A stretch of 64,000 bases of DNA from Leucoraja erinacea. Lineage: Eukaryota. The translations under genes and the position numbers were made by a program. The notes below the pieces were generated by a model. That model saw only the letters and a program-made list of their open reading frames with translations, ran no database searches and was not told the DNA's origin. The stretch is taken from positions 16,492,001 to 16,556,000 of the forward strand of contig NC_073386.1 in assembly GCF_028641065.1 (NCBI RefSeq), in the 5' to 3' direction. How positions within the stretch are numbered: position 1 is the stretch's first letter; every line of letters begins with the position of its first letter. This document shows positions 7,208 to 29,841 of this stretch, piece by piece.

Positions 7208-7450
7208 TATTCACTCAGAGAGTGGTGAGTCTCTGGAACTCTCTGCCACAGAAGGTAGTTGAGGCCAATTCATTGGCTATATTTAAGAGGGAGTTAGATG
7301 TGGCCCTTGTGGCAAAAGGGATCAGGGAGTATGGAGAGAAGGCAGGTACAGGATACTGAGTTGGACGATCAGCCATGATCATATTGAATGGCGGTGAAGA
7401 GCCGAATGGCCTACTCCTGCACCTATTTTCTATGTTTCTATGTTTCTATT
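7208..7450 (+). mobile_element. CR1 LINE 3' end
   Basis: FTQRVVSLWNSLPQKVVEANSLAIFKRELD; tail tttctatgtttctatgtttctat. Confidence 0.9.
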
Positions 7451-7639
7451 TCCACTTGGTTCTTTGTTGTCTAATTGATTGACCAATTTTTTTCCCTCGA
7501 CGTAACCACCTGGTTTGGATGGCCCCTACAGAGCTCCTCAACAACTATCAGGAAGGGAGTTGACCAGGCATATCCAAATCATAACAATTCCCAGGCTTTT
7601 CCTGGAATTATGTCAGGAAGTGCAAAAAACAAAAAATGC

Positions 7640-9755
7640 AGATTTGCATTTGAATGGCCCTGGCTCAATGACACTGCCAGAGCCCTAAGAAGAGAGTGCA
7701 GAAAATCAGAACGGGAGTATAAATCTGATAAGCTTCAAATTTCCTTTGAACTTCTGAGAAACAATCTTCTCAAATACCAGGAGCAGTAAAATCTGCGAGA
7801 ACACAATACTTTTCCAACCATATTTCCAAAAATGCCCATAACTCCAAGGTCCTATTTAGTACCATTACCTTTGTCGTATGCCCTGCCCCCAGTACCAGCT
7901 TAGCTGGGTCCCTGCCAAGTGCGAAGAATTTACTACATTTTTCACCAGTAAAGTTGTGAACATCAGAACTAATATTTCCCCTCCCATCCGTGACCTAGCT
8001 GTCTCATTGGTCTGTTCTAAATTAGACTGTTTCCAACCCGTTACTTTATCCTCCCTTGCAAAGCTGGTCTCCATTATGAAACCTGCAACCTGCCCCCTTG
8101 ACATTGCCCCCATTGCCCTTCTGAAGGATGACATTGCAATAGCCGGTCGCAGTTTCCTCTTTATCATCAACAGTTCTCTGGCCACTGACACTGTTCCAAC
8201 CTGTTTCAAGCACGCGGTGGTCCAGCCCCTCCTGAAAAAACCTAACCTAGACCTCACCTTGCCTAGCAACTACAGACCTATTTCCAAACTGCCTTTCCTT
8301 TCAAAAGTCCTTGAAAAGATAATTCTAGACCAACTAATGCCTTATCTACACCAAAATTCCATCCTGGGAAGTTTCCAATCAGGTTTCAGGGCCCACCACA
8401 GCACAGAGTCTGCCTTGTTGAAGGTACACAATGACCTCCTTCTCACCATCGACTCCGGCGACTGTGCAATTCTGCTCCTTCTCGACCTCAGCACAACATT
8501 TGATACAGTGGACCACACCATCCTAATTGACCGTCTCCGGTACGGGGTTGGTATTGATGGCACTGCCCTGAGCTGGTTTGTCTCCTACCTCAAATATAGG
8601 AGTTTCTCTACAAACATAGGTAACTCTTTCTCCTCCCCAGCTAGCCTCTGCTGCGGGGTTCCACAAAGCTCCATCCTAGGCCCCGTTCTCTTCTCTCTGT
8701 ATATGCTCCCCTTAGGCCAAGTCATTCAAAGGCACGGCATTTCTTTCCACTGCTGTGCAGACGATACATAGCTCTATCTCCCCCTGAAACCCAACAACCG
8801 ATCAAATCTACTCAGCCTTATGCACTGCCTCGAAGATATAAAGTGTTCAATGGCCCAGAACTTCCTCCAACTAAACGAGAGCAAGTCTGAGGTCATCCTA
8901 CTCGGCCCCTCGGACTCCATCAAAACGATAGCAGGAAGCCTTGGAAGCCTTACCCCCTTACTCAAACCGCACGCCAAAAACCTTGGCGTGATATATCGCA
9001 TTGAAGTTTGACAAACAAGTCAATGCTGTGGTAAAAGCTAGCTTCTTCCAACTTCGCACGATAGCTAAAATCAAACCACTCCTCTAATTTGACGACCTTG
9101 AAAAGATCATCCACACATTTATCTCCTCCTGCCTTGATTACTGCAACTCCCTTTACACTGGCATCAGCCAATCTTCCATGTCCCACCTGCAATTGGTCCA
9201 AAAACGCTGCAGCGAGACTTCTGATCGGCAACAGAAAAAGGGACCACATCACCCCGATTCTGGCCTCTCTCCACTGGCTCCCTGTGTGGTTCAGAATCAA
9301 TTTCAAGCTCTTCCTTTGGGTATACAAAGCCCTTAACGGGCTTGCTCCCACCTACATAAAAAATCTGCTAACCCACCATTCTACCTCCAAGTCCCTCAGG
9401 TCGGCCGACTTGGGGTTTACTGACCATCCCGCGATCTAGGCATAAGCTCAGGGGCGGCTACGCTTTTGCGTTTGCAGCACCTAGACTGTGGAACTGCATC
9501 CCTCTTCTCATCAGAACTGCCCCCTCCATCGACTCTTTTAAGTCTAGACTTAAAACTTATTACTACTCAGAAGCGTTTGTTGAGGTCCTCTGAGGGAGCT
9601 CTGTATGTATGTATTTATGTACGTATTGTTAGATCTATGTGCCATTGTATGTAGCACGTTAGTACCTGCGTTGATGTAAAGCATTTTGGTCAATGAGAGT
9701 TGTTTTTAAATGTGCTATAGAAATAAAATTGACTTGAATTGACATTGACTTGAAT
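7640..9755 (+). mobile_element. L2-clade LINE, 5'-truncated, with RT domain and 3' tail
   Basis: ORF 7878-8771 NYRPISKLPFLSKVLEK, QSGFRAHHSTESAL, LLDLS..FDTVDH, GVPQ.SILGP, CADDT; HITPILASLHWLPV; tail aaatgtgctatagaaataaa+(ttgac)n. Confidence 0.92.
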
Positions 9756-22907: not shown

Positions 22908-24056
22908 GAAGCATAGAAACATAGAAATTAGGTGCAGGAGTAGGCCATTCGGCCCTTCGAGCCTGCACCGTCATTTAATATGATCATGGCTGATCATCCA
23001 ACTCAGTATCCCGTACCTGCCTTCTCTCTATACCCTCTGATCCCCTTGGCCACAAGGGCCACATCTAACTCCCTCTTAAATATAGCTAATGAACTGGCCT
23101 CAACTACCCTCTGTGGCAGAGAGTTCCAGAGATTCACCACTCTCTGTGTGAAAAAAGTTCTCCTCATCTCGGTTCTAAAGGATTTCCCCCTTATCCTTAA
23201 GCTGTGACCCCTTGTCCTGGACTTCCCCAACATCGGGAACAATCTTCCTGCATCTAGCCTGTCCAACCCCTTAAGAATTTTGGTAAGTTTCTATAAGATC
23301 CCCTCTCAATCTCCTAAATTCTAGAGAGTATAAACCAAGTCTATCCAGTCTTTCTTCATAAGACAGTCCTGACATGAATCCCAGGAATCAGTCTGGTGAA
23401 CCTTCTCTGCACTCCCTCTATGGCAATAATGTCCTTCCTCAGATTTGGAGACCAAAACTGCACGCAATACTCCAGGTGTGGTCTCACCAAGACCCTGTAC
23501 AACTGCAGTAGAACCTCCCTGCTCCTATACTCAAATCCTCTTGCTATGAAAGCCAACATACCATTCGCTTTCTTTACTGCCTGCTGCACCTGCATGCCTA
23601 CCTTCAATGACTGGTGTACCATGACACCCAGGTCTCGCTGCATCTCCCCCTTTCCCAATCGGCCACCGTTTAGATAATAATCTGCTTCCCCGTTTTTGCC
23701 ACCAAAATGGATAACCTCACATTTATCCACATTAAACTGCATCTGCCAAACATTTTCCCACTCACCCAGCCTATCCAAGTCACCTTGCAGTCTCCTAGCA
23801 TCCTCCTCACACCTAACACTGCCCCCCAGCTTAGTGTCATCCGCAAACTTGGAGATATTGCCTTCAATTCCCTCATCCAGATCATTAATATATATTGTAA
23901 ATAGCTGGGGTCCCAGTACTGAGCCTTGCGGTACCCCACTAGTCACTGCCTGCCATTGTGAAAAGGACCCATTTTACTCCTACTCTTTGCTTCCTGTTTG
24001 CCAGCCAGTTCTCTATCCACATCAAGAAGACTGAACCCCCAATGCCATGTGCTTTA
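22908..24056 (-). mobile_element. CR1 LINE, RT domain to 3' end
   Basis: ORF 23356-23946 SGVPQGSVLGPQLFTIYINDL...KFADDTKL; catagaaa tail. Confidence 0.95.
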
Positions 24057-26097: not shown

Positions 26098-26490
26098 TTA
26101 TAGAAACTTACAAAATTCTTAAGGGGTTGGACAGGCTAGATGCAGGAAGATTGTTCCCAATGTTGGGGAAGTCCAGAACAAGGGGTCACAGTTTAAGGAT
26201 AAGGGGGAAATCATTTGGGACCAAAATGAGAAAAACATTTTTCACACTGAGAGTGGTGAATCTCTGGAATTCTCTGCCACAGAAGGTAGTTGAGGCCAGT
26301 TCATTGGCTATATTTAAGAGGGAGTTAGATGTGGCTCTTGTGGCTAATGGGATCAGGGGGTATGGAGAGAAGGCAGGTACAGGATACTGAGTTGTATGAT
26401 CAGCCATCATCATATTGAATGGCGGTGCAGGCTCGAAGGGCCGAATGGCCTACTCCTGCACCTATTTTCTATGTTTCTATGTTTCTATGT
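26098..26490 (+). mobile_element. CR1 LINE 3' end
   Basis: LDRLDAGRLFPMLGKSRTRGHSLRIRG...; (tttctatg)n tail. Confidence 0.92.
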
Positions 26491-27231: not shown

Positions 27232-27540
27232 TTTAGTTTAGTTTAGAGACACAGCATAGAAACAGGCCCTTTGGCCCACAGAGTCGACATCCACCATCGA
27301 TCACCAGTTCACACTGGTTCTACATCCTCCCACTTCGCACCCACTTACTTCACACTACAGCCAATTTAAAGAGGTTAATAAACCTACAAACCTGCACATC
27401 TTTGGGATGTGAGAGGAAACCCATGCAGTCACAGGAAAATGTACAAACTCCATACAGACAGCACTCGAGGTCAGGATCAAACTCTGGTCTCTCATTCTGT
27501 GCGATAGTGGCTCTACCAGCTGCGCCATGGTGTTGCCCAA
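27232..27540 (-). mobile_element. tRNA SINE
   Basis: Antisense head gggcaacaccatggcgcagctggtagag; tttagtttag tail. Confidence 0.8.
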
Positions 27541-27594
27541 CCTTGTTGTTCATGGTGCTGCCCAACCTTGTTGTTCATGGTGCTGCCCAACCTT

Positions 27595-28290
27595 CAGTAT
27601 GGCCTTGATTATGACATAAAGTATAACGCTAAGAAAAGCCGCATAATGATAGTTAGAAGCGCTGAGGACAGGAAATCAACTTTTCCGACCTTTTATTTGT
27701 CAGACAGTCCTCTTGCTGTGTGTGAGGAAATTAAATACCTAGGTCATGTCATATCCGATGACTGGACGGATGACAAAGACCTCTACCGACAGCGCTGTAA
27801 AATTTATTTTCAAGCTAACATACTTATAAGGAAGTTTTCTATGTGCTCTGACTGTGAAGTTTTCCTTGTTCAGAACCTATATCACACCGTTATATACTGC
27901 TCAATTGTGGTCTAACTATAAGAAAAAGAGTATGCAGAGGCTCAAGGTAGCATACAATGATGCAATGAGGTTGCTGCTTCGTGTCCCTAGGTGGCATAGT
28001 GCCAGTCAATTGTTTGTGTCCACTAGAGTGCCAACCTGTGGGGCACTCTTAAGACAGCTGATGTTTAGTTTTATGTGTCGCCTGGACAAGTCAGAGAACC
28101 ACATAATTGAAGCCCTAGTCAGCCCTCTAAAAAGCTGCTATAGATTCACTTCTAGGCTAAGATGGCATTGGTGCAATAGCTTGTATATCTTATAGGCTAA
28201 TATGCAATTTTTAATGTATTTTTTGTATCTCCTTATACTGTATGATGTGTTATATGGACCTGTGTCTGAAATAAAGCTTTTATTATTAAT
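27595..28290 (+). mobile_element. RTE-X-like LINE 3' fragment
   Basis: IKYNAKKS...IKYLGH..DDKDLYRQ...ANILIRKFSMCS / KFSLFRTY..PLY.AQLW...RLKVAYND.MR; one frameshift; aataaa + (tta)n tail. Confidence 0.75.
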
Positions 28291-28322
28291 GGCTGCGTTT
28301 GAAACTTTTCTAATTGTTACTA

Positions 28323-28376
28323 GGGGTGAGAGATTGCAACCTTCACGTGGTCCACCCTGTTTTGACTAATGCAATC
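28323..28376 (+). ncRNA. HDV-like (CPEB3-type) self-cleaving ribozyme, minimal P4
   Basis: P1 ggggtga/ccaccct (G1-U wobble), P2 gattgca/tgcaatc, P3 acc/ggt, L3 ttcacgt, G28359 for P1.1, J4/2 ctaa with catalytic C28366. Confidence 0.8.
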
Positions 28377-28459
28377 AACCCGACGTGCACAAACAAATAG
28401 ACCAAATAGAACAAGTTGTCCTACAACTTTAGGTTGTGCACACCATACGCTAGAAGAAG
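28323..28459 (+). mobile_element. Short non-autonomous retroposon (ribozyme head, ccatacg + GAA-repeat tail; Ingi/Vingi- or RTE-like)
   Basis: 11-bp TSD aatt(g/a)ttacta at 28312-28322 and 28460-28470; tail ccatacgctagaagaaga. Confidence 0.75.
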
Positions 28460-28810
28460 AATTATTACTAATCCTGCCCATAACATGACAATGCTGGAAT
28501 AACATTTCAGTATCTACTCAGTGGTTTCGAAGAGACTCGCAAAAAGTAACATCAGGAAAATTCAAAACCTTGCTTCTTTTAGTAATCTTGATACCAAGTG
28601 TGTATTATAGGAATTCACATGATAGGTTTTTATAGTGAGCAGGGGCTTAATTGAACATAGAACATTGAAATGTACAGCACAGGAGCAGGCTCATTGGCCT
28701 GCAATGTCTGTGACGAACATGATGCCAAAATTAACTAATCACATCTGCTGTACATGATCCACATGCCTCAATTTGCTGCATATCCATGTGCCAATCTAAA
28801 AGCCTCTTAA

Positions 28811-29841
28811 TATGTATGTTACAAAACCTACCTGAATCGTGGTTGAGAATCTGCCCCACCCCGTGTGCGCAATTTTGGCACTGTTTAGAGGGGGCGGGTT
28901 TAAAACGCGATTTTTACTAGGCTGTTGCAATCGAAAATGTTCAGCCTAGTAAATCATTAACGGAAAATCGCTGAAAGACCCCGTCGCAAAAGGTATTATT
29001 AGTTTTTATGGCCTTGTATAATAGTTATAGTAGTTTAAAAATCACTCTCTAAACCCGCGACCTCTCGCAGCCCCAGGGTTTTATAAAGCAAACAATTAAA
29101 AGTATGTACCTTATTTTTACATTAAAAGGGGCTTCTTAAGAACCCTGTAATAAAGTTTTCTATAGCGAGTAACTCATTTTGGACTCTTTATATCCCGCAG
29201 TATTTTTCTGGGCATTTGAGGGCATAAATCCAGCGCAATGTGAACGTTCTAAACCAGCGCGTTCACAGGATTCCACTAGAAAGCTGATTTAAAATGGACT
29301 TTAATTTACAGCAATTGAACACTAAATTCCTTCCATTTGGCCTATAAATTGATGTAAATGAGATTTAAAAATCATGTTTTATTGTGAATTATTTGTGAAT
29401 ATTATTTGGACACTTAGGCTATTTAAAAATGTTAATCATTTATTAAGAAATGGATAGATGTTTAGATCTAGTAATTGAAGTTTGAAATTAGGTACAATTG
29501 GGTAAATTATATGCTTTAATTTCAGGTCATCCAAGTAAGATTATTTTATATTTGTTTCAGAATGGTTCAATCTATGATAACTGAAAATTTCATTCAGTTC
29601 TCTTAATTTTTAAGAAAGTTATGGGCTTTTGACTGTTCACGATCACAGCTTTTTTGTTATGTCCATAGAAAATCAATAGGGAACAAGATGCTAATTTCCG
29701 AGTATGAAAATGGCCATAACTTTTTATTACTTGAGATATGAAAGTGAATTAGGTGTCAAATTAAACTTATTTTTATGCTTTATCTGATGGGATAAATTGC
29801 AGACTTGATTTTTTAAATCTCAACATTTTGTAACATTGCTA
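28811..29841. mobile_element. Non-autonomous DNA transposon (hAT-like), about 1.03 kb
   Basis: TIR core atgttacaaaa (28816-28826) / ttttgtaacat (29826-29836); TSD ctcttaa(t) at 28804 and 29842; splits a CR1 tail. Confidence 0.75.

Follow-up and report, generated by a model that had tools for sequence, protein, structure and literature searches.

A 137-bp insertion at positions 28323-28459 (+) of the 64-kb window analysed here, which is the whole stretch of Leucoraja erinacea contig NC_073386.1 between 16,492,001 and 16,556,000, is read by us, with a probability of roughly 70%, as one old copy of a bipartite, non-autonomous derivative of a long interspersed nuclear element (LINE), which lacks an open reading frame (ORF), is headed by a predicted minimal ribozyme of the hepatitis delta virus (HDV) type and ends in an (AAG)n tail. 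The insertion carries a target-site duplication (TSD) on both sides, the two copies of which are identical at 10 of 11 positions (repeat finder), and its 137 nt are without coding capacity, so that the traits of a bipartite ORF-less LINE are present together with the tail. Its 3′ end reads ...CCATACGCTAGAAGAAG. The ribozyme parts, hairpins, tail and TSD described in an earlier note on this DNA are all present in the sequence where that note had placed them, and the left TSD copy ends directly before G28323, such that the predicted cleavage site abuts the 11-bp TSD as had been proposed. We infer catalysis by the head, a partner LINE and a role for the 3′ hairpin; the head probably serves to trim the front end of the element out of longer transcripts.

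The strongest single result is the position of the 5′ end of the family to which the element belongs. Reads of one RNA run and contigs of three DNA sets, labelled A, C and D by organism, were placed on positions 28173-28609 at a likeness of at least 80%, and at this likeness 7,246-9,070 contig pieces per DNA run fall on the element. The summed word depth is 0.14-2.5 million per bin inside the element versus 20-39 in the unique 3′ flank, a measure which is not a copy number and is read as “very abundant” only. By its DNA contig depth the element is a high-copy dispersed repeat. The 5′ boundary of the family lies at 28323, with loose ends at this position in 211 (X1), 219 (X4) and 251 (X10) contigs, and the letters upstream of it are unrelated among the family copies and AT-rich, with an agreement of about 0.35. 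The 5′ end of the family is therefore G28323 (G1), the predicted scissile position, and the retroposon family with 5′ ends at G1 that the earlier note had envisaged is confirmed in all three DNA runs. At the other end, the family boundary lies at 28459-28461 and many copies run on with GAAGAA, indicating a microsatellite tail, (AAG)n, whose length varies. In the sets labelled C and D, contigs furthermore run from within the element (28435 and 28421, respectively) into the unique flank with a few differences. As these contigs span the joint between element and flank, the insertion predates the split of those organisms; no joint skipping the element was found among the DNA contigs of the three sets.

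All helices of an HDV-like double pseudoknot that lacks P4 are matched by the first 54 nt of the element. The paired (P), joining (J) and loop (L) segments follow the order P1-J1/2-P2-P3-L3-P3′-P1′-(P1.1)-P4-J4/2-P2′, with P4 present as a 6-nt stub (Table 1). The core letters of HDV-like ribozymes are a +1 G that closes P1, a C in L3 and a G after P1′ which together form P1.1, and a C-N-A-A motif in J4/2. This list is partly visible in the consensus lines of the Rfam models RF00622 and RF02682, and the corresponding letters of the window copy are G28323-U28358, C28344/G28359 and C28366-T-A-A. In P1 of the window copy, five Watson-Crick pairs are accompanied by the G1-U wobble and by a single mismatch, A28329-C28352.

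The letters of the family, expressed as shares of word depth and with variants counted at ≥5% among the positions listed, bear directly on this fold. Position 28329, an A in the window copy, is a G in about 97% of the family depth. Since this majority G pairs with C28352, the A-C mismatch becomes a G-C pair and P1 a perfect 7-bp helix. Position 28363, a T in the window copy, is a C in about 92% of the family depth, and with C28363 the P4 stub of most copies would form a mini-hairpin consisting of a U-A-closed UUCG loop. The window copy departs from the family majority at both A28329 and T28363, and may as such be a weakened or dead copy. Elsewhere in P1, the family depth at position 28354 divides into about 46% A and about 54% G, both of which pair with U28327, and a C>T change at 28353 (about 5%) keeps a G-U pair. 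The unpaired J1/2 position 28330 changes from G to A in about 22% of the family depth, and position 28367, the N of C-N-A-A, is T in about 64%, G in 28% and A in 8%. Transitions at the CpGs 28346/47 and 28364 occur at 6-8%, those at CpGs outside the head at about 3-8% (DNA runs), and the transitions at 28346/47 (6-7%) are the only variation in L3 among the positions listed. Among these positions no variant at ≥5% was found at C28366, A28368, A28369, C28344 or G28359, nor in P2 or P3. The 3′ module folds at -13.9 kcal/mol (z -1.66), a stability matched by 11/200 shuffles. In it, C28384 would gain a partner in the majority G at 28442 (72%), and C28443 in the G at 28383 (43%), and these pairings would make the outer stem longer.

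The specificity of the fold was assessed with an HDV descriptor requiring a 7-bp P1 with at most one mismatch, a J1/2 of 0-4 nt, a perfect P2 of 5-8 bp, a 3-bp P3 and the L3 motif TYCNCGN, followed by a G, 3-89 nt, C-N-R-A and P2′. The descriptor was composed after the site had been seen, and its L3 motif was adopted as background. On both strands of the 64 kb it matches only the site at 28323, and in 300 shuffles of this sequence that preserve its dinucleotides it has no match on either strand. When any L3 is allowed, eight loci in the window are matched versus a mean of 3.05 in 40 shuffles, so that the L3 constraint carries much of the specificity. By our own arithmetic the rate of chance fits is ~5e-8 per position, which amounts to hundreds of fits per Gb-sized genome, and the descriptor alone is therefore not decisive.

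This chance rate, the post hoc origin of the descriptor, the energy z-scores of about 0 and the Rfam match at E 4.8 (both considered below) would accord with an ordinary short retroposon, or a 5′ plus 3′ deletion derivative of a LINE, whose 5′ end was set by an internal promoter and whose head resembles a ribozyme by coincidence. We regard such an element as highly improbable. As the family starts at G1, the fit begins at its first base, so that a single position and not a whole genome has to be tested, and 0/300 shuffles fit. The majority letter of the family repairs the only mismatch in the fold. Furthermore, as set out below, the same core heads a LINE with apurinic-type endonuclease (APE) and reverse transcriptase (RT) domains, where P1 and P3 differ by compensatory changes and P2 is fully paired but unrelated, and the heads of this LINE match the CPEB3 ribozyme model versus 0/20 controls. 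The fit of the fold is not chance.

Relatives of the head were found in metagenomes with the pattern GGGG-N(11-19)-TTCACGT-N6-CCCYG, the letters of which were taken from the window site and which matched at least 117 loci. Among the matches listed, one LINE family is present at at least 12 loci with four sample prefixes (Table 1). Metagenome contigs that bear this LINE include JGI24158J21664, JGI24159J19872, Ga0210059 and JGI24022J15233. Each of its copies begins with GGGGAGG, or with GGGGGGG in the case of L060, and is preceded by 12 bases that differ from copy to copy. The head consists, in order, of P1, J1/2, P2, P3 (GCC), TTCACGT, GGC, P1′, a G, a P4 hairpin of 23-33 nt, C-[TC]-A-A and P2′. 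The strict HDV descriptor matches four of the loci (L006, L034, L067 and L111), with at least one mismatch in the other copies. Downstream of the head, L034 encodes an Exo_endo_phos_2 domain (APE; E 9e-6; 26.0 bits, below the cut-off of 27.4) and L024 an RVT_1 domain (RT; E 1.4e-11), and the sequence downstream in L111 resembles by eye the start of an APE domain. On the strength of these domains and heads, the family is classed as an autonomous-type APE/RT LINE with the same kind of predicted ribozyme at its 5′ end, which supports the interpretation given in the earlier note.

A third lineage is represented by L044 (1188-1263, -), where P1 is GGGGTCA/TGACCCT, P3 is ACC/GGT, L3 is TTCACGT and J4/2 is CCAA. 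It lies in a very AT-rich metagenome contig of 1.5 kb with no ORF downstream, and its P2 pairs only with a bulge (by eye), without a perfect P2 of ≥5 bp. P1 positions 5-7 distinguish the three lineages: the majority of the window family has TGG/CCA, L044 has TCA/TGA and the LINE has AGG/CCT. P3 is ACC/GGT in the window family and L044 versus GCC/GGC in the LINE, its first position being A-T or G-C. The P2 strands have no sequence in common among the three lineages, and are 7/7 paired in both the window copy and the LINE family. As to the covariation of the helices raised in the earlier note, two-sided changes in P1 and P3 are seen only between the lineages, among loci fetched with a pattern from the window site, and the changes within the window family are one-sided and wobble-compatible. 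Among the matches listed, 66 pattern-like sites outside the 13 loci served as a control: none has the full fold and three have a P1 of at least six pairs with a P3 of three, so that the fold is not imposed by the search pattern. For the 12 LINE rows (L044 and the window copy were left out, being misplaced by MAFFT), 93.6% of 204 cells pair versus 43-59% with the partners slid, and one of 17 pairs covaries, from G-C (6) to A-U (5). The observed covariation measures are reached by 15-16/500 shuffles, a modest result, as expected for close copies. In a blastn comparison of the element with the at least 117 metagenome loci the ribozyme core was matched and the 3′ module never. Since it shares the ribozyme core only, the metagenome LINE is a relative of the head, not the partner. 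No TSD marking the 3′ ends of the metagenome LINE copies was found in the contig sequence searched.

The model of the mammalian CPEB3 ribozyme, RF00622, matches six of the eight fold-bearing LINE/L044 loci (22.1-31.8 bits; E 1.5e-4 to 0.23), all six scoring below its gathering score of 35, and has no match in L044 (at E≤1) or L094. It is the only ribozyme family that matches the eight loci, and at E≤10 it matches none of 20 pattern-matching control loci without the fold. In its consensus, L3 is UUCACGU, P1 starts G-rich, P1′ is followed by CCCUGU and P2′ is preceded by CGAA. The TTCACGT of the window is identical to this L3, which upholds the CPEB3-type loop recognised in the earlier note, and the element has further features in common with the CPEB3 ribozyme, namely the G-rich beginning of P1, CCCUGU at the junction and C-N-A-A as J4/2. 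The CPEB3 ribozyme, in contrast, has a P4 helix and is single-copy and intronic; it is described as mammalian and intronic (PMC8256844; PMC10274809). An RF00622 score, a P4 helix and a single conserved intronic locus, which characterise the CPEB3 family, are all absent from the element. By its letters, it is CPEB3-like in the core and not a CPEB3 family member.

Several results weigh against a working ribozyme in the element. No Rfam family reaches its gathering score in the window, and thus no curated covariance model does so on the element. The HDV ribozyme of F. prausnitzii (RF02682) gives a weak match in exact register (28323-28376, full model; 13.8 bits versus a gathering score of 44; E 4.8 in a 401-nt search), and RF00622 has no match to the element at E≤10 (28200-28600). 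Rfam models cannot score a pseudoknot. The covariance model R1, for which the 12 LINE heads served as the training set, matches the window once, at 28323-28384 (28.7 bits; E about 2e-5; next best window match at E 0.85), and is discounted as circular because its training loci were chosen with letters of the window site. Nested folding by minimum free energy (MFE) is no better than in shuffles, with z -0.37 for the whole element, +0.10 for the first 54 nt and -0.84 for the first 37 nt, and favours a competing helix, 28332-37/28347-52, over P2 and P3. MFE programs cannot model the double pseudoknot, and this result is counted as no support, not as counter-evidence. Inside the window family there is no two-sided compensatory change, and variability in the ribozyme head is not clearly below that of the 3′ half (about 8/54 versus about 14-18/83 polymorphic positions listed). 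Similar variability of the two halves is, however, what would be expected if copies drift after insertion and only source copies are selected. Lastly, no partner LINE, which the earlier note had proposed to be of the Vingi/Ingi or RTE type, was found in the 64-kb window by blastn of the element, and tail and motif searches returned nothing above chance.

The transcripts point in the same direction. In the RNA run X22, a poly(A) run of which about 6% was read as raw reads, 816 reads fall on the element, 806 of which extend into unlike sequence, and both orientations of the element are read at similar depth (about 58:42). The predicted cleavage site is crossed by 252 reads with loose upstream letters at 28323 and 47 at 28322, and no excess of read starts was found at 28323, an excess being defined as at least five starts amounting to a fifth of the adjacent depth. 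Reads over the 3′ boundary are not in excess of those over the 5′ boundary (at least 198 versus 299, listed rows), and the unique flanks of the window locus have 0 reads. Judged by this run, the element seems to travel in longer RNAs as a passenger that is for the most part uncut. As 5′-OH products are poorly detected with standard poly(A) libraries, the result weakens the cleavage claim without refuting it.

The absence of a start peak at G1 and the many read-through reads would be expected if the head derives from the 5′ ribozyme of a LINE but no longer cuts, and has persisted after the loss of P4 as a compact 5′ structure only. Such a head could protect the end, make contact with the reverse transcriptase or a ribonucleoprotein, or act as a stop for reverse transcription, and the uniform 5′ end would then result from full-length copying of a short template that begins at a transcription start or another processing site. 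That RF00622 misses the element while the P4-bearing LINE heads score with it, and that MFE folding favours the competing nested helix, also speak for a head of this kind. We nevertheless consider it unlikely: P4-less “minimal drzs” are a described class (PMC10879173), no variant at ≥5% is listed at the proposed catalytic C, in L3 (CpG decay apart), at G28359 or at the A-A of J4/2, and the family boundary falls exactly at the predicted scissile bond and not a few bases off.

An active ribozyme might alternatively matter mainly to the host, with copies in introns and untranslated regions (UTRs) serving as co-transcriptional cleavage sites and not for transposition. The CPEB3 ribozyme, for whose mammalian intron such a role has been proposed, offers an intronic example (PMC10274809), and the transcription of the element in both orientations as a passenger, with nearly all of its reads extending into unlike flanks, is compatible with such a role. 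Most of the reads, however, cross the site uncut, the CpG variant shares are alike inside and outside the head (about 3-8%), as expected without selection after insertion, and the unique flanks of the window locus lack reads, which makes a primarily host-directed function very unlikely. The suggestion in the earlier note that each copy could cut host pre-mRNA was likewise not borne out for the window copy, which deviates at two positions of the fold and whose unique flanks are without RNA reads.

Under our preferred reading of the element as a ribozyme-headed, ORF-less LINE derivative, a source copy would be transcribed by read-through as part of a longer RNA. The 54-nt P4-less ribozyme with its CPEB3-type core would then cleave itself out 5′ of G1, which would set the 5′ end of the element and leave a compact pseudoknot there. 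The reverse transcriptase of the partner LINE would bind the nested hairpin of the 3′ module together with the (AAG)n tail. Through target-primed reverse transcription, the partner would then place a copy of the RNA in AT-rich DNA and so produce the 11-bp TSD.

Elements of this general kind are known from other hosts. According to PMC5786205 (Kojima 2018), reports of bipartite non-autonomous LINEs without an ORF are confined to four clades, RTE, Ingi, Vingi and R2, with the 5′ end of the LINE kept, and 5′ ribozymes are given for six LINE clades, R1, R2 and R4 as well as RTE, Ingi and LOA, a list on which Vingi does not appear. Worked examples of ribozyme-headed ORF-less derivatives are NARTc (PMC3383444) and the R2 SIDEs (PMC3414825). 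NARTc/RIME, Pr77-bearing elements of the L1Tc/ingi clade in trypanosomatids, resemble the element in being short, ORF-less, headed by the HDV-like ribozyme of a LINE 5′ end and mobilised in trans (PMC3383444; PMC5786205). Their 77-nt head, however, doubles as an internal promoter and folds more completely, and their hosts are protists, whereas the element has a 54-nt P4-less head with a CPEB3-type L3, a chordate host and no evident promoter. The R2 SIDEs of Drosophila likewise keep a 5′ ribozyme and a 3′ protein-binding end with the ORF deleted (PMC3414825). R2 is site-specific in 28S rDNA and employs a restriction-like endonuclease, while the element is dispersed in AT-rich sites with 11-bp TSDs and an (AAG)n tail. 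In the bipartite LINEs of RTE and Vingi, the 5′ and 3′ ends of an APE LINE with a single ORF are joined and followed by a microsatellite tail, an architecture like that of the element, and ribozymes are predicted for the RTE heads (PMC5786205). Minimal HDV-like ribozymes lacking P4 form a described class, the origin and function of which are largely open according to a 2024 paper (PMC10879173). Its drz-Mtgn-type members and the theta ribozymes of phages share with the element a double pseudoknot without the P4 domain (PMC10879173), but stem from metagenomes and phages, whereas the head of the element tops a eukaryotic retroposon. In the literature searched, which included few subscription papers, no report was found in which retroposons of sharks or skates are connected with HDV-like ribozymes, or in which a ribozyme is ascribed to Vingi. 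The kind of element is known, whereas a 54-nt P4-less head with a CPEB3-type core in a very abundant chordate retroposon was not found in the literature searched, Repbase and Dfam not included.

The value of the finding hinges on catalysis, which is here predicted. If the head is a ribozyme, the element would provide the first biological setting in a eukaryote for P4-less minimal HDV-like ribozymes, and a vertebrate genome with a very high-copy ribozyme would constitute a natural variant library for structure-function work and a possible source of widespread RNA cleavage. The element would also provide a concrete lead on the origin of the mammalian CPEB3 ribozyme, since an independent, curated CPEB3 model recognises LINE heads with the same core. 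With its 54-nt 5′ module and roughly 80-nt 3′ module, it represents about the smallest complete retroposition template usable, which bears on the designs for RNA templates that are reviewed in PMC13708176. A bolder view, in which the 54-nt P4-less ribozyme is active at the order of 10^4-10^5 copies in a vertebrate genome and gives the transcriptome of the animal thousands of self-cleavage sites, the same CPEB3-type core heads autonomous LINEs of other organisms, the “mammal-only” CPEB3 ribozyme is a domesticated LINE or retroposon head and the minimal drzs come from a eukaryotic retroelement, is tentative and in our estimation rather unlikely.

Table 1. Parts of the element at 28323-28459, its flanking duplications and the metagenome loci of the related LINE family.
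Feature	Position	Strand	Basis and remarks
Left TSD, AATTGTTACTA	28312-28322	+	10/11 versus 28460-28470; abuts G28323
P1 5′ strand, GGGGTGA	28323-28329	+	Predicted cleavage 5′ of G28323
J1/2, GA	28330-28331	+	Unpaired; sequence and HDV descriptor
P2 5′ strand, GATTGCA	28332-28338	+	7/7 complementary to 28370-28376; repeat finder
P3 5′ strand, ACC	28339-28341	+	Pairs with GGT 28349-28351
L3, TTCACGT	28342-28348	+	C28344 is the proposed P1.1 partner of G28359
P3 3′ strand, GGT	28349-28351	+	Sequence and HDV descriptor
P1 3′ strand, CCACCCT	28352-28358	+	Sequence and HDV descriptor
G for the single putative P1.1 pair	28359	+	Letter in sequence; pairing proposed
P4 stub, TTTTGA, 6 nt, without P4 helix	28360-28365	+	Sequence
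J4/2, CTAA, with proposed catalytic C28366	28366-28369	+	HDV descriptor
P2 3′ strand, TGCAATC	28370-28376	+	Repeat finder, inverted repeat
3′ module, nested hairpins	28377-28442	+	Presumed recognition site for the reverse transcriptase of the partner LINE
Outer hairpin around inner hairpin	28385-92/28434-41 (extended 28385-97/28429-41) around 28413-19/28423-29	+	Repeat finder
Tail, CCATACGCT + AGAAGAAG	28443-28459	+	Sequence
Right TSD, AATTATTACTA	28460-28470	+	Repeat finder
LINE family loci in metagenomes (matches listed)			L006, L014, L024, L034, L042, L043, L060, L067, L088, L094, L108, L111

Other identities of the insertion were considered. ARAGORN predicts 0 tRNA genes in 27800-29000 and no Rfam match to tRNA, 7SL or 5S was obtained, which rules out a classical tRNA-type short interspersed nuclear element (SINE) with an RNA polymerase III head; as no Rfam family is present either, the description of a promoter-less, SINE-like element given in the earlier note stands. 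A reading on the opposite strand is ruled out by the tail and the TSD, which fix the orientation, and a circular-RNA, “retrozyme-like” cycle was dropped, as no back-joints were found in the X22 RNA. The element has no second copy in the 64-kb window (blastn).

The window contains further LINE-related sequence. RVT_1 fragments are encoded at 22920-23946 (-) and 7878-8771 (+), with E 4e-11 and 6e-20, respectively. For an RT ORF of the window, Chordata is the most frequent phylum among the few taxon-labelled members of the two nearest protein clusters, and Arthropoda in the third cluster listed. The former was rejected as a partner since it ends in a TTTCTATG repeat and not in (AAG)n, and an 8-mer array similar to this repeat is present at 26462-26490. 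Two frame-shifted ORF pieces at 27568-27915 and 27854-28195 (+) resemble the C-terminal part of a LINE reverse transcriptase and are followed by a short 3′ UTR which ends near 28290 in ...AATAAAGCTTTTATTATTAA; these pieces were likewise rejected as a partner, as they end without an (AAG)n tail. The DNA contig depth over 28173-28292 ranges from thousands to 140,000, which indicates that another abundant repeat lies directly upstream of the insertion. A 25-nt unit is repeated 2.8 times with 97% identity at 27526-27594, adjoining the LINE fragment upstream.

The shares of variants in RNA and DNA differ strongly at 28395-28397, 28381, 28446 and 28450. The A>G changes at 28395-97 make up about 10-35% in RNA versus about 1% in DNA depth, and the C>T change at 28381 about 34% versus about 4.5%. 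These differences likely reflect a different weighting of subfamilies, although RNA editing in the hairpin loop may also contribute.

Three of the metagenome loci show peculiarities of their own. In L034 (602-714, -) the head is partially duplicated in tandem, its first 41 nt being followed by a complete head. L043 (5933-6560, +) carries the predicted ribozyme and about 330 nt of the LINE 5′ region, interrupted by an unrelated stretch of ~290 nt, beyond which its likeness to the other copies ends, and may be a truncated or internally deleted LINE derivative. A long, perfect-looking hairpin at 14498-14624 of L067 has sub-threshold matches to the MIR2606 and mir-1284 models, and is probably an inverted-repeat element rather than a microRNA.

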